Sequence record: OR496884.1
DNA length: 64,000 nt
Direction: 5' to 3' (one strand)
Part shown: piece by piece, positions 51,347 through 57,305 of the stretch
Position numbering within the stretch: position 1 is the stretch's first letter
How the letters are laid out: each line of letters begins with the position of its first letter
Position numbers and translations under genes: made by a program
The notes under the pieces: generated by a model
The model's database searches: none
Seen by the model: only the letters and a program-made list of their open reading frames with translations
What the model was told of the DNA's origin: nothing

Positions 51347-51826
51347 TTAAACCTTACATTTATTCCATGTCTCTCGACATAGTTTAATTGTTTTAGGGAA
51401 CAGATCTTTTTCCCACATCTTATTAAGAATCCGATAACCTATTTCGGTTGATGATCCGTAGTTAAGAGAAATGTGTAATTTTAATTCTGGGAAACTGTGT
51501 TCAAATCCAAGCTCTTGAAGTTCTTTAAAACGTCGCTGTATCGCATCAGATTCAAGAACTAATGCCAATGCGTAGTAATTCCCATTTGGATTACCCATTT
51601 TCTCAAAACCGATTACATTGGCAGTATAGACGGTATTATTAATTCCAGGATCAATCTCAGGATCACGTTTGTCATACATCAATGTCGCATGTATTTCATT
51701 TCCTGAAAGATTAACCATTTCCCATTTTTCTTCTTCCGGGAATTCATTAAGGAATTTGCTAACAGCAACATAAATATCAGAAATTGATTTAACGTCAACA
51801 CACAGTGACGAGTACCCCATTCCCAT
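51347..51826 (-). CDS. 2H phosphoesterase, Acb1 (T4 57B)-like
   Basis: Two HxT/S motifs (IHATLMY, LHISLNY), second preceded by GFEHSFPE; ~159 aa. Confidence 0.75.
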   Translation of the reverse strand: MGMGYSSLCVDVKSISDIYVAVSKFLNEFPEEEKWEMVNLSGNEIHATLMYDKRDPEIDPGINNTVYTANVIGFEKMGNPNGNYYALALVLESDAIQRRFKELQELGFEHSFPELKLHISLNYGSSTEIGYRILNKMWEKDLFPKTIKLCRETWNKCKV

Positions 51827-52158
51827 TATGCTTTCTCCGTATCGTATACGTTTCTTTCTTTGCGGTCTTCTATTCTAGTGTTTAATGCAAAGAGTGCTGA
51901 CTTCAAACCATCCAAAGCAATATCATTGTGCTGACATTTAAATTGGTTTTGATTGAATTTATCTAATCGATAAATACACATCGCAATGACAGCTTCCAAT
52001 GTAACGCCGTTGACACCAATTACCGGAGAACCATTTTGAAAACATATTTTACCCAATTCATTTTGTTGATTATCTAAAGCAACAAAATCGTTAATTGTCC
52101 CAGAGCGAATAATTGTACATATATCATCAGTGTGGATAATTTCAGTTGTCAATTCCAT
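51826..52158 (-). CDS. Tad1-like nucleotide-signal sponge protein
   Basis: FQNG...GVNG...E......RL..F....F.C..N..AL....A...L..RIEDRKERNV pattern; ORF-track start 52206 lies in a hairpin, ATG 52158 preferred. Confidence 0.65.
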   Translation of the reverse strand: MELTTEIIHTDDICTIIRSGTINDFVALDNQQNELGKICFQNGSPVIGVNGVTLEAVIAMCIYRLDKFNQNQFKCQHNDIALDGLKSALFALNTRIEDRKERNVYDTEKA

Positions 52159-52191
52159 TTTAAAATCCAAATAAAAAATAGTTGTAAGTAA

Positions 52192-52220
52192 AGAGGTAAC
52201 TACCAATGGTAGTTACCTCT
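52192..52220. terminator. Hairpin after 52226-52900
   Basis: 13-bp stem agaggtaactacc/ggtagttacctct. Confidence 0.7.
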
Positions 52221-52903: not shown

Positions 52904-55187
52904 CTAATCCTCTTGTATGGGTTCATCCAATAACAATGCGTTGTAATTCAATAAATTTGTTTTTGTTGCTGTTGCAAAACGACTTGTCTTAAACAGGCGG
53001 TTTGGATCCAACATTTGATGATGGCCAAAAGAACTATACGCCTGAATTCGACTAATCAGATCTGGCAACATAATGCAATACATTTGGTCCTAACACATTG
53101 TAACGCTTCACAGCGGCTTTAGTTGTTCGCTAAACAACATTCCGATACTTTCATACCGGTTGAGATCATATCTTCAAAACTACATCCTTGTAGTTTGCCT
53201 ACCGTTAACCCAAGCTTTTGGGTACATGATCGTTGAACACATCGTAGATTTATATCTAGGACTTCGTTGCTGATTGCCCATTATAATTTCTAACCCTTAG
53301 CACCCAATCTTCCAAGACTAGGTTATTAAGCATAGGTCATTTCTTTGTTTCTTTCTACCTTTCGGTAACATTCACGCTCACCCTCTCAGGTCACGTTGTA
53401 GTACAAAGAACTTTAGGGGTTTCCAGCAGTTAGATAGGTTTAACGACGGCAACCAAATTTTACCGTCAAAGTCTGCCATATACATTGTCCACTTAAGTGG
53501 TTTTCACCGATTGCGCTAATTCGGCATTCCGATAGTCTCCTACCGGTTGAGAGTACATCTTTCAGGTTCTAACAAAAGTTAGCCCGTCCCCACGTTCGGA
53601 TCGCGACATGATCCACTTACTCGTTGAGCACACTTCCTATCCATTCTCACGAATGTACTTAGAAGCTTCGCTGCTGATTGACTCTATTCAATTCTTTTTA
53701 AACCACACCATATACCGTTTCCAGTTCCGTTTTGGTGAATTGACCTAACAAGTTCGTTCCAGCAATTAGAGGGGTTTTACTTCGGCACAGAGTCTACCGA
53801 ATTCTTTTACAACTGTTATTGGAATACGGATTGATTTATCTTCAACGTCCCTATTAAACTTCAAAAAGAACGTTCGAGCTGAAAGATATTGGATAGAAGG
53901 ATTTCGACCAGCGATCGCCATTGCATACTGGTTTGTCTCTATCCAATCAAAGAACTCCTCAATTACTGGATGACGGTAATTGGCAGCGCTCCGAATGATT
54001 TCTTTTGCTTTTAATGGACTATAACCTTTTACTCGGTACAACCAGTTTGACAAATGTTTATCATAACACGTTATACCGTACAGCCAAGGCACTACAATTG
54101 TATCAGATCGACAAACACCAGATTCACCAGTAATGATAGAACGACCCGTCATAGGAAGTTTACCAGCACCAGCATGATAACGGATCATTCCTTTCTTCTT
54201 AAACACCACCGCTTCCATCACCTTATACATCACGGCTCGGAGTTTGGTAAAATGTTTACCCATTAATGTTCCGTTTTCTTCCGAACGAATGTCGTAAGCA
54301 GGAAACATATCAGCAATGGTAAAAAAGAATTTATCCAGGTCTGTCTTTTCTTTATTGATGTAACGATCACGTTGGTCGCTTTCAATAATGGTCGTTATTT
54401 TATTTGGTATTGGGAAATATTGAGAAACAGCAAGATGTTTAAACTTGTTCCAGAATCGGGAATAATGTTCCCTGGAACGCTCGTCTACATCTAGAATACC
54501 ACAAAGATCTTGGTTAACAGATGCATCAATAATTAAATCGATGTTTTCAATAAATTCGTTATAACCAAATTCAAGACCTAGTGTATCTCTAAACGCTTCT
54601 ATTTTACATGCTATTTTAAACGCCGTGTTGGTAGGATCTCTAAACCGTTTTTCTTTTCTAAGATCACTGTTAATCCAATATTCCACCAGATTAACTTTTG
54701 GTGTTTTGGTATTTAAGTTATCAAAGAAAACTTTACATATAGATGGATTAAGAAACCCTGCTACTTTATCAGGTGTTTTTAGCCATACTTTTGTTTCTAT
54801 TTTATCAACTAATGGCTTAGTGACAGAGTGTCCGCAATCTTCACAAACAACATTCATATCCAAATAAATGTTGGATCGATACTTTTTACATTCGCATGAT
54901 GCTACTGTATCAAAACAGTTTCCTTCATACTCCGTTCTAAGCAAGCTGATAATACGGTCTCGATCTTCTTCCTTATTAAAATCGAAATCGTTTAAATAAA
55001 TAGGTGTGTTGACAGAACAATTGTGTCTGGCATCATAGTCATCAAAATCCGGATACAAAGCTTTATAAAAACTTTGATCGTCCTTTGGAATTTTAAAACC
55101 AGTTTCTTTAATGATTTTATTAAAGATAGCCGACGGCAACAGGTTTTCTACTTCGTAAGGTTTTAAGATTTCCGCTAAAGTAGGCAC
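52904..55187 (-). CDS. nvRNAP catalytic beta-prime N-terminal subunit (phiKZ gp55-like), spliced join(55187..53796, 53476..53462, 53089..52904), 530 aa
   Basis: Zn site CECKK...CEDCG, RNPSI; splicing restores KEFG-ADFDG-DQMYC with the DFDGD Mg-binding motif. Confidence 0.93.
53090..53461 (-). mobile_element. Group I intron 2 (372 nt, IA-like, no ORF)
   Basis: Exon GACGGU pairs IGS GCCGUC with U-G at the splice site; P10 GACCAAAU/AUUUGGUU; P AACUGCUGGAAA, Q AAUCAGCAAC, P7 GAUCA/UGAUC; ends in G. Confidence 0.93.
53462..53476 (-). other. 15-nt micro-exon GCAGACTTTGACGGT encoding ADFDG
   Basis: Reads in frame between two group I introns and completes the RNAP active-site motif. Confidence 0.93.
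53477..53795 (-). mobile_element. Group I intron 1 (319 nt, IA-like, no ORF)
   Basis: Exon UUCGGU pairs IGS GCCGAA with U-G at the splice site; P10 GCAGA/UCUGU; P AAUUGCUGGAA, Q AAUCAGCAGC, P7 GAGUA/UACUC; ends in G. Confidence 0.93.
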
Positions 55188-55316: not shown

Positions 55317-57305
55317 TTACAGAGTAGTAAACAGACCAGACAGACCCAGAGCACTGTTCTGGTTCTGAGGAGCCAAAGTAGCAGTCATCATCATGTTCAG
55401 GATTTCGTTATCTACCTGGTGAGTCCACTGACCGTTGTAGTTAGAAGCAGATACTGCAACAGTACCGGCAGCAACCATTGCTTGAGCCATGGTAGACGCA
55501 AAAGCATTGGATACGATCAGACGCAGATCCCAACCTTCAATACGAGCAGTGTTGTTGGTCAGTGCTTGCAGACGGCTGATGATGTTGAACTGACGGACAC
55601 GAACGTCCAGGTTACCGGTACCTTGAATCAGAGCCATGAACTCAGCAATTGCTTGTTCGTTCTGACCGTAGTATTCCGGCTGACGCAGCCACATGGCATC
55701 GATCTCGCCCAGATCAAACAGTTTACCATCTTTACCAAAACCAGTACCGTGCGGGCGCAGTACTTTGGTTTGGTGAACAATTGCGTCACCAACTTTCCAC
55801 TGCTTGTTAACGTCACGACCGTTTTCATTACCATTCAGAGTCGCCAGTTCACTGAACTTGCCTTTGGACAGCGCGTTCATACCAGCAATCACTGCGCGGT
55901 AGTAAGGGGAAGTAACGTCTTTGCTTGCTACGCCAAACCAGAATTCAGAAATAGCACTGTTTTCCAGGTTCGGTGCAATGTCAATCACATAGACAGGGTT
56001 GGTGGAGACGTACTTTTGGATCCAGCTGCTGACAACAGCGATGTTCATGATGTTTTTATCAGTCAGGAACTCGTTAGCAACATAGACACCTGGGAGCATA
56101 GCAGCCAGAGTGTTGTTGAACACACTCAGGTTACCACGGTATCCAACTTCTTTACCACGGTAGGCTTCTGCTAGGGTTGCTTGACCGTTTGCACACAGCG
56201 CTGCGTACAGACCCATGATAGAAGCGATCGGGCTGGCGTTATGGTTCAGGGTTTCACCAGGGAAAGAAGTCCCGATAGAAACAACTGGTACCAGCGGACC
56301 TACACCACCTTGACCAGGACGAGCAACACGTGCTTGTTGGAATTGACCAGGAGACATCATTTCCAGCTGAACGTTCAGGTTGGTAGTGATGATGGACTTG
56401 CTGTTGTTGTTCTGGCTGTAACCACCTTGGTTTTTGTTGGTAGATGCCAGTTTAACACTCAGGTTGTACGGAGTAGGGACACCGTTATGAACATGACGGC
56501 TCATTGCTTCGATACGAGCCAGAGCGGCATCGTGTTCACCAAACAGTTTACCGTCTTTTGCCGGAGAAGGCAGAGTAACGTTATTCTTGACGCCCAGCAG
56601 GATACCCAGAGACAGCAGACCCAGGTTCCAGTCATCCATCATGCGGTTAACAACGGCACGAATCAGATCACCTTCTTTGACGTCGTTTTTGATGTAACGT
56701 TCCAGGTTGATAACGTTCTGGGACATGACATACACTTCATCCATTTTGTTGCCTTCAACAACACTGAATGCTTGCTTGACACGAGTCAGCAGATCTTTGG
56801 TCATGAAGCTGTTCGGAACTTTGGCAAACCCACGCGGAGCTTCGTTTTGCAGTTGAACAGTATCGGTTGCATCAGTAACACCGTCTTTGAAGAACAGTAC
56901 CGGCATAACGAAAACAACTTTGTTGATGACAGTATAAACAGCAACACCAGGAAGTTGCGGAGAGATCTCAGTAGACAGAGTCTGAACAGCTTTAGGCAGA
57001 GTTGCCTTTTGTGCTTCTGCCGCGGTATTCATGCGCAGAGTTTTGGTACGCTCGTCCAGTTCTTTGATAACCAGATCCAGCTCAGAGATTTGATGTTGGC
57101 TGGCGACGATGTTGTGCATACCCAGGAGAGTGGTCAGTGCATTTACGGAGGTGGACATAGTTACATTTCCTTGTTGGTTAGAAGATGAATCTTGCTGTTG
57201 GGGTTGAGATTGAAAAGGAGTATCTTGCGGTTGCTGACCAAAAGAGGTGTCAGCGCCAAGTTGATGACCAGATTGCGACTCTGGTGCGTCATCAGTATGA
57301 ATCAT
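55317..57305 (-). CDS. chmA: Chimallin, major phage nuclear shell protein (phiKZ gp54-like)
   Basis: 662 aa, Q/S-rich N-terminus, strong high-expression codon bias, directly upstream of nvRNAP beta-prime; HGTGFGKDGKLFDLGEIDAMW resembles the recalled ChmA G.W.D..G...D....D..W segment. Confidence 0.88.
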   Translation of the reverse strand: MIHTDDAPESQSGHQLGADTSFGQQPQDTPFQSQPQQQDSSSNQQGNVTMSTSVNALTTLLGMHNIVASQHQISELDLVIKELDERTKTLRMNTAAEAQKATLPKAVQTLSTEISPQLPGVAVYTVINKVVFVMPVLFFKDGVTDATDTVQLQNEAPRGFAKVPNSFMTKDLLTRVKQAFSVVEGNKMDEVYVMSQNVINLERYIKNDVKEGDLIRAVVNRMMDDWNLGLLSLGILLGVKNNVTLPSPAKDGKLFGEHDAALARIEAMSRHVHNGVPTPYNLSVKLASTNKNQGGYSQNNNSKSIITTNLNVQLEMMSPGQFQQARVARPGQGGVGPLVPVVSIGTSFPGETLNHNASPIASIMGLYAALCANGQATLAEAYRGKEVGYRGNLSVFNNTLAAMLPGVYVANEFLTDKNIMNIAVVSSWIQKYVSTNPVYVIDIAPNLENSAISEFWFGVASKDVTSPYYRAVIAGMNALSKGKFSELATLNGNENGRDVNKQWKVGDAIVHQTKVLRPHGTGFGKDGKLFDLGEIDAMWLRQPEYYGQNEQAIAEFMALIQGTGNLDVRVRQFNIISRLQALTNNTARIEGWDLRLIVSNAFASTMAQAMVAAGTVAVSASNYNGQWTHQVDNEILNMMMTATLAPQNQNSALGLSGLFTTL

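Follow-up and report, generated by a model that had tools for sequence, protein, structure and literature searches.

Two predicted group I introns around a 15-nucleotide micro-exon in the catalytic motif of a jumbo-phage RNA polymerase gene

Why would five catalytic-site residues of an RNA polymerase be encoded by an exon of only 15 nucleotides (nt), and is such an exon a point of regulation? This question is raised by a 64,000-nt stretch of sequence record OR496884.1, analysed here over its whole length (the window), which derives from Aeromonas phage AerS_266, a phiKZ-like, chimallin-encoding phage of the genus Chaoshanvirus. A split gene for the β′-N subunit of the non-virion RNA polymerase (nvRNAP) lies on the minus strand of the window, immediately downstream of the chimallin gene (55317-57305). 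An earlier note on this DNA had placed a micro-exon in this gene at 53462-53476, and had proposed that the order or efficiency of its splicing could time the activation of nvRNAP or yield inactive isoforms. The coordinates proved correct, and the feature, which lies on the minus strand, reads A-D-F-D-G. As for its meaning, we consider it quite probable that two introns without open reading frames (ORFs) are stacked in an intron hot spot, that the micro-exon is a by-product of this stacking, and that the upstream intron was relocated from the lineage of introns found at the downstream site, site B. The predicted parts of the gene are as follows.

53796..55187, minus strand: exon 1, 464 amino acids (aa), with the 3′ end GAATTCGGT (E-F-G); defined by its ORF, the match to PDB 7OGP chain A and tblastn
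53477..53795, minus strand: group I intron 1, at site A (between the G and A codons), 319 nt, AGACUC...UAUAUG, no ORF, terminal G
53781..53791, minus strand: guide of intron 1, UCUGU followed by GCCGAA; the P10 part faces micro-exon bases 1-5 and the P1 part the last 6 bases of exon 1
53462..53476, minus strand: micro-exon GCAGACTTTGACGGT, 15 nt, A-D-F-D-G, with the first two Asp of the β′ Mg-binding motif NADFDGD
53090..53461, minus strand: group I intron 2, at site B (between the G and D codons), 372 nt, AAAAUU...GUGUUAG, no ORF, terminal G
53445..53458, minus strand: guide of intron 2, AUUUGGUU followed by GCCGUC; the P10 part faces exon 3 bases 1-8 and the P1 part micro-exon bases 10-15
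52904..53089, minus strand: exon 3, 61 aa (DQMYCIML...IQED) and a stop codon, with the third Asp of the motif

The identity of the gene was drawn from PDB entry 7OGP and from tblastn. The exon 1 protein matches one solved chain, 7OGP chain A (phiKZ nvRNAP, named as PHIKZ055 and PHIKZ056.1; E 8.5e-24), and tblastn matches were obtained in 261 jumbo-phage records with exon 1 and in 70 phage records with exon 3. Because of the match to this chain and the matches in jumbo phages, the split gene is identified by homology as nvRNAP β′-N, the orthologue of phiKZ gp55, which is what the earlier note had assumed. A Pfam search of the exon 1 and exon 3 products of this divergent protein matched no family. 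The AerS_266 record has a single place that matches nvRNAP β′-N, and this is therefore the only such gene in the genome.

When the exons are joined, they encode a stop-free protein of 530 aa that aligns without gaps across both junctions with the intronless orthologue of Kosakonia phage Kc263 (...KEFGADFDGDQMYCIMLPD... in AerS_266, ...KEYGADFDGDQMYVIFIPD... in Kc263). The predicted spliced junction sequence, ...GAATTCGGT-GCAGACTTTGACGGT-GACCAAATG..., reads EFG-ADFDG-DQM, gapless against the ADFDGDQM of intronless orthologues, with the three-aspartate β′ motif at the homologous position. The exon 1 RNA ends in ...GAATTCGGU and the micro-exon in ...GACGGU, so both 5′ exons end in U; the last bases of the introns are ...UAUG (intron 1) and ...UUAG (intron 2), with G final in both. 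The alternative products described in the earlier note were reproduced: the unspliced ORF has 473 aa with the C-terminus RLCAEVKPL, and skipping of the micro-exon is in frame, giving EFG-DQM at the junction and a computed product of 525 aa. Retention of intron 2 alone would leave a product of 496 aa, and the 530-aa catalytic subunit would require the removal of both introns with the micro-exon kept. No homing endonuclease gene was found in either intron: reading frames on the sense strand stay free of stops for at most 34 aa in intron 1 and 53 aa in intron 2. A twintron was considered and rejected: the ribozymes are adjacent, and P1 to P9 are present separately in each of them; the arrangement in the contig L068, in which intron 2 occurs alone and the micro-exon is joined straight to exon 1, also contradicts it.

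The exon borders are confirmed in relatives. In many orthologues found by tblastn, exon 3 starts exactly 15 nt past the end of exon 1, as is the case in Kc263, pEt-SU, N1M2, OBP, AH04, AhC3_1, SXP01, D6, LAh10, D9, BUCTxx100, YC1 and pTD1. Clustering at 90% identity grouped the 473-aa read-through ORF with closer relatives on the contigs L067, L068 and L069, which are assemblies of public sequencing runs. Both introns are present in L067 and L069, with the micro-exon and the guides identical to those of AerS_266 and with intron 1 differing at about 3% of positions. The recurrence of the arrangement in these independent assemblies rules out an assembly artefact. In L068, where the guide of intron 2 is also identical, intron 1 is precisely absent: GAATTTGGT runs directly into GCAGATTTTGACGGT, and intron 2 follows. 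Because intron 1 is missing exactly at its borders, L068 provides a natural empty site A. In ZPAH34 and CF8, no intron interrupts site B. Two positions around site A, 53799 and 53471 (-4 and +6 on the minus strand), are both C (TTC, GAC) in the alleles with intron 1 and both T (TTT, GAT) in the empty-site L068. This difference could mark a co-conversion tract, or it could reflect selection for a stronger P1, with G-C replacing G.U at -4.

Both intervening sequences are classed as group I introns on their matches to Rfam family RF00028. Intron 2 scored 60.7 bits (E 9.5e-15), above the gathering score of 50, and intron 1 scored 43.3 bits, below it, with E 1.6e-9 in a local scan and 1e-7 over the whole window. 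In the whole-window scan by E-value, these two introns were the only RF00028 matches. The relatives of intron 1 in D3 and PS1 (intron 2) scored 88.4 and 79.6 bits, respectively, and 17 base pairs of the P4-P9 core of intron 1 stay paired despite two-sided changes with respect to these introns. Given these 17 compensated pairs, intron 1 has been kept under selection for the ribozyme fold. A whole-window Rfam scan at gathering thresholds had returned zero matches, the speed filters having missed both introns, which were recovered by a focused scan; default Rfam filters can hide above-threshold group I introns when the query is long.

How, then, might each intron find its own exons? The pairing energies of the guides, each of which lies within the first 18 nt of its intron, were compared with those of shuffled guides. 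The P1 of intron 1 (UUCGGU/GCCGAA) has 6 base pairs (bp) with the canonical U.G and an energy of -7.4 kcal/mol, equalled by 1.2% of shuffled guides. Immediately 5′ of this P1 guide comes the P10 guide, in the position expected for P10. The pairing of this guide, UCUGU, with GCAGA (micro-exon bases 1-5), described in the earlier note, was found with 5 bp including one G.U and -5.4 kcal/mol, though 12% of shuffles match it, so that taken alone it is not beyond chance. The note had also paired GACGGU (micro-exon bases 10-15) with the P1 guide of intron 2, GCCGUC; this P1, with its U.G, has -9.9 kcal/mol and is equalled by 0.2% of shuffles. The P10 of intron 2, between GACCAAAU (exon 3 bases 1-8) and AUUUGGUU, has 8 bp and -8.5 kcal/mol (0.9% of shuffles). 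According to the note, the guide of intron 1 fits exon 2, the micro-exon, and not exon 3, and indeed no pairing with exon 3 was obtained (+0.3 kcal/mol). A cross pairing of 4 bp (-4.5 kcal/mol) exists between the CGGU at the end of exon 1 and the intron-2 guide. The count of 11 constrained nucleotides out of 15 was likewise right, as 11 micro-exon bases lie in either the intron-1 P10 or the intron-2 P1. Calling the micro-exon a splicing guide is accurate as to the pairings but not as to the roles: the micro-exon is the target, and the guides themselves are intronic.

From these pairings we propose that each intron recognises the end of its own 5′ exon by a 6-bp P1 with U.G and its own 3′ exon by the adjacent P10 guide. 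The micro-exon would serve intron 1 as 3′ exon with bases 1-5 and intron 2 as 5′ exon with bases 10-15. Because these two segments do not overlap, either intron could be spliced first. The difference between the two P10 guides is most simply read as a means of joining the exons in the correct order.

Is this crowding of introns peculiar to AerS_266? We compared about 20 intron-bearing phages and contigs with about 50 homologues from IMG/VR and metagenomes, most of the latter intronless. Four group I insertion sites were found within 12 nt of the motif, all of them between codons and each after a codon-final U.

Site A, between the N or G codon and the A codon: phiKZ (with the gp56 HNH gene) and AerS_266 intron 1
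Site A′, between the A and D codons: EL, phiKp_32, VB_ZK_P1 and L058
Site C, between the D and F codons: ZPAH34, CF8, AVP1, PS1, ACP1, PDCC-1, Vibrio phage 2 TSL-2019 and L050
Site B, between the G and D codons: AerS_266 intron 2, D3, pAEv1810, PS1, ACP1, Miami, phiKp_32, VB_ZK_P1, VP4B, USC-1, Aphrodite1, L051 and L052

On this comparison, the NADFDGD-coding DNA of jumbo-phage nvRNAP genes is an intron hot spot, and other tiny exons occur in it. In PS1 and ACP1, RF00028 introns at sites C and B surround a micro-exon of 9 nt, and in phiKp_32 and VB_ZK_P1 a candidate micro-exon of 12 nt lies between a site-A′ RF00028 intron and an intervening sequence of 311 nt.

PS1 L007 967-975 and ACP1 L008 956-964: 9-nt micro-exon TTCGACGGT (F-D-G), shorter than that of AerS_266; the downstream P1 uses 6 of its 9 bases
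VB_ZK_P1 L011 801-1123 and phiKp_32 L010 1848-2170: candidate micro-exon GATTTTGACGGT with the 311-nt sequence

The 311-nt sequence begins like site-B introns and its removal is needed for the reading frame; with no match to RF00028 even at E 10, it is left unclassified. The twin arrangement at sites A and B was absent from the 33 loci of a profile search of IMG/VR and from the 17 loci of a profile search of JGI metagenome contigs, and the latter contigs contained no exact copy of the 24-nt junction pattern. A single-protein search of IMG/VR returned zero relatives.

Codon usage in the motif varies with the occupied site. The first Asp codon is GAC in all 18 distinct intronless alleles and GAU in every site-C carrier, while the Gly codon is GGC in 13, GGU in 4 and GGG in 1 of the intronless alleles and GGU in every site-B carrier. 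In this way the splice-site U imprints synonymous positions, and the exon bases are, in a modest sense, doubly constrained. The site-C intron itself differs in length, with 591 nt in ZPAH34 (L002 3401-3991, minus strand) versus 439 nt in CF8 (L003 490-928). The extra ~152 nt of ZPAH34 are located between P1 and the core, close to the 5′ end, and AVP1 has a 336-aa HNH-NUMOD ORF at the equivalent place.

Where did the two AerS_266 introns come from? Intron 2 is, over its full length, 76-77% identical to the site-B introns of pAEv1810 and ACP1, and is an ordinary member of the widespread site-B lineage. Intron 2 of L067 is longer, with an insert of 801 nt upstream of the 3′ splice site. Within this insert, a 162-aa ORF (L067 5374-5862) shows weak similarity to the NUMOD/DNA-binding end of HNH homing endonucleases (phrog_59 E 1.8e-3; NUMOD1 E 0.05); it probably represents an endonuclease gene that has been truncated. 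Of this insert 72 nt remain in L069 and none in AerS_266, and HNH ORFs are present in introns of PS1 and AVP1. These sequences indicate that the intron 2 lineage formerly carried an endonuclease and that AerS_266 intron 2 has lost the gene.

For intron 1, the closest matches are also site-B introns. The blastn scores were 151 bits with PS1 intron 2 and 97 bits with D3, versus 35 bits with the phiKZ site-A intron and 41 bits with intron 2. In a maximum-likelihood tree of 17 intron cores, a site-B clade is separated from an A/A′/C clade (support 96/95), and intron 1 falls within the site-B clade beside D3 and PS1 intron 2 (support 98/99). Approximately unbiased (AU) tests rejected both a clade of intron 1 with the phiKZ intron (p 0.013) and a sister relationship of introns 1 and 2 (p 0.004). 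The P1 guide of D3 and PS1, GCUGUC, pairs with GACGGU, and that of AerS_266 intron 1, GCCGAA, pairs with UUCGGU. Two of the positions at which these guides differ face exon bases -5 and -6, which are GA at site B and UU at site A; a third differing position pairs with G(-3) in both forms, and the P10 parts differ as well. CGGU before the splice point and G after it are common to both sites. The changes in the guide suggest a retargeting 15 nt upstream. Intron 1 most likely derives from another site-B branch, that of D3 and PS1 intron 2, and probably moved to site A, a look-alike site 15 nt upstream that also ends in CGGU, and adapted its guide. Reverse splicing or illegitimate homing may have been the route, and the pattern fits the requirement of a 4-6 nt guide that has been proposed for reverse splicing (PMC3984707).

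Several points weigh against this explanation or parts of it. To the chance-level P10 of intron 1 and its RF00028 score below the gathering score must be added its low identity to its nearest relatives, PS1 intron 2 and D3 (only 63-66%), which points either to an old relocation or to a true donor outside the sample; no closer copy was found in other phage genomes of the collection searched. The intron 1 branch is long (0.57), the placement of intron 1 with the whole non-B clade was borderline and not quite rejected in the AU test (p 0.057), and all three AU tests were chosen post hoc, after inspection of the tree, and are hence weaker. The guides and the micro-exon are identical across the three carriers, so that covariation lends no support to P1 and P10. 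Finally, the spliced AerS_266 junction was sought in RNA libraries and not found, no library being shown to contain the phage; the metatranscriptome X18 gave short fragments only, none of which spans a spliced junction.

That both AerS_266 introns actually self-splice is what their sequences predict. For site A, the conclusion that splicing yields a real subunit comes from phiKZ: the 7OGP chain joins PHIKZ055 and PHIKZ056.1, and phiKZ has an RF00028 intron at this place, between gp55 and gp56.1 (L016 4169-5540, flanked by CCTAAT and GCTGATTTTGACGGC; 75.6 bits). A long-read transcriptome study found no evidence of splicing for the phiKZ introns (PMC10914365); this report and the fused protein in PDB 7OGP stand unreconciled in the literature.

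Two other histories of the introns can be considered. Intron 1 could descend, vertically or by homing, from a phiKZ-type site-A intron, the carrier of the gp56 HNH gene, and could always have been at site A, its likeness to site-B introns being due to convergence or recombination of the core. The insertion site is the same as that of the phiKZ intron, and the long branch and the p of 0.057 leave some room for such a descent. It is nevertheless unlikely in view of the blastn scores (35 bits versus 151 and 97), the 98/99 support for the site-B placement and the rejection of a clade with the phiKZ intron, and the 5′ region and 3′ terminal hairpin of intron 1 align with those of PS1 intron 2 and D3. 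A recent tandem duplication of one intron within the AerS_266 genome would account for shared core segments such as CUCAACCGGUA.GA.A.UAUCGGAAUG and for the similar 3′ ends, but it is hardly credible: the significant blastn match between the two introns is limited to a stretch of 37 nt (the 41 bits given above), each has far closer relatives in other phages, and the AU test rejects them as sisters.

Is the micro-exon then a control point? If the twin introns were a selected regulatory device, the order or efficiency of splicing would delay active nvRNAP, or skipping or retention would yield dead β′-N isoforms with a role of their own. In-frame skipping agrees with this, and the CGGU at the end of the micro-exon recurs at the end of exon 1, which lets the intron-2 guide pair over 4 bp with exon 1. 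Both introns also have similar 3′ ends (ACAAUGU...G), and exon skipping by tandem group I introns has been reported for phage Twort, according to its citation in PMC3073962. Furthermore, nucleus-forming phages separate transcription from translation (PMC12908238), whereas the splicing of T4 introns depends on translation, according to a paper cited in PMC10914365. The 4-bp cross P1, the similar intron 3′ ends and the Twort orf142 precedent make low-level skipping mechanistically conceivable. However, intron 1 is missing from L068, a member of the same 90% protein cluster, and neither intron is present in CF8 or in ZPAH34 (95% aa identity), each of which has instead a single, different intron at site C, between D and F. 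Such variable intron content among close relatives is the pattern expected of selfish mobile elements, not of a conserved regulator. The skip is in frame because a group I 5′ splice site needs U at -1, which here is a third codon position; this between-codon rule is common to all four sites, and the in-frame property is therefore no evidence of design. The misfit of the intron-1 P10 guide with exon 3 and the strong 8-bp P10 of intron 2 with exon 3 both favour correct joining. An inactive subunit still able to assemble would probably do harm, because two of the three metal-binding Asp would be lost from the only nvRNAP β′-N gene of the genome.

We therefore regard a selected regulatory device as very unlikely, and find the proposal of the earlier note on timing and inactive isoforms unsupported, since the arrangement is not conserved in the nearest relatives and the U(-1) rule explains the reading frame. 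There is correspondingly only a slight chance that the 15-nt exon is a real control point at which 525-aa β′-N (two catalytic Asp lost) or 473/496-aa β′-N is made at defined times and tunes or delays nvRNAP. Were this true, a bacterial virus would be using ribozymes for the alternative splicing of a catalytic site. The explanation that we prefer is that two ORF-less group I introns of different lineages have come to be stacked 15 nt apart in the DNA of the NADFDGD Mg-binding loop, and that the micro-exon would be the by-product of two selfish elements at neighbouring sites.

How does this locus compare with known systems? In phiKZ (gp55, the HNH gene gp56, and gp56.1) the same gene lies beside chimallin and is interrupted at site A, between N and A of NADFDGD, and the mature protein in 7OGP is a fusion of two exons. 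Unlike AerS_266, phiKZ has one intron, with an HNH ORF, and no micro-exon, while intron 1 of AerS_266 is ORF-less and outside the phiKZ intron lineage. In Staphylococcus phage Twort, the single gene orf142 holds three similar, closely spaced group I introns, whose relatedness makes exon skipping possible (Landthaler and Shub 1999, as cited in PMC3073962). In AerS_266, by contrast, the internal exon is 15 nt long and encodes catalytic residues, and the introns belong to different sub-lineages with distinct P10 guides. Mitochondrial mini-exons of less than about 4 codons, encoding conserved residues between self-splicing introns, are regular and are routinely missed by annotation tools (PMC10352661). 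Those of fungal cox1 genes, with group I and II introns, resemble the present case in that tiny exons for highly conserved residues lie between self-splicing introns, but they belong to organellar genes and often depend on maturases. Another jumbo-phage RNA polymerase gene, PhiPA3 gp210, has a group I intron right after conserved catalytic aspartates (PMC11620839). It differs in being the gene of a virion RNA polymerase β subunit and in having a single intron with an active HNH endonuclease, whereas the AerS_266 introns have no endonuclease gene. Lastly, related group I introns at neighbouring ribosomal DNA sites have been attributed to reverse splicing (PMC1299323; reviewed in PMC3984707). 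There, too, related introns occupy nearby sites, and guide-target complementarity of 4-6 nt defines the new site; the target in AerS_266 is instead a protein-coding phage gene, for which a candidate donor lineage, an occupied site and an empty site are at hand, the mechanism being a proposal in both cases.

Group I introns in RNA polymerase genes of jumbo phages are thus already known (phiKZ gp56, gp72 and gp179; EL ORF025; PhiPA3 gp210), and so are the fused exons in the phiKZ structure, tandem phage introns in Twort, and mitochondrial mini-exons. In the literature searched we found no description of a phage gene with a micro-exon flanked by two group I introns, of a four-site hot spot in the code for NADFDGD, or of the apparent retargeting of intron 1.

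What do these findings mean for the annotated genome? The GenBank annotation of OR496884 contains no intron, and the gene is represented by two coding sequences.

53766-55187, minus strand: GenBank coding sequence WNV45883.1, "RNA polymerase", 473 aa, with a 9-aa tail translated from intron 1
52904-53083, minus strand: GenBank coding sequence WNV45882.1, hypothetical protein, 59 aa

The segment ADFDG is in no annotated product, and introns go unmentioned in the AerS_266 genome paper. The same split annotation is found in ZPAH34, CF8, D3, PS1, ACP1, Miami, VP4B and others. An essential polymerase subunit is thus misannotated, with the five catalytic-site residues of the micro-exon absent from every annotated product, and correction of the annotation is the immediate practical value of the finding. 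Just downstream of the polymerase gene lie two further genes (51347-51826 and 51826-52206, both on the minus strand), for which GenBank gives the products anti-CBASS nuclease (Acb1-like) and anti-Thoeris protein; the products of their relatives match Pfam families PF23474 (Acb1) and PF24729 (Acb2_Tad1_hairpin).

Introns in RNA polymerase genes of jumbo phages are already known to affect co-infecting phages, as the PhiPA3 gp210 intron matters in the competition between them (PMC11620839; Birkholz et al. 2024). The nvRNAP motif of jumbo phages, with at least four insertion sites and differing pairs of occupied sites, offers a compact natural system for selfish introns that compete for, or share, a target. 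For testing how introns relocate, AerS_266 is a rare case: taken together with its metagenomic relatives, it supplies site A in both its occupied and its naturally empty form, along with an altered guide and a candidate donor lineage.

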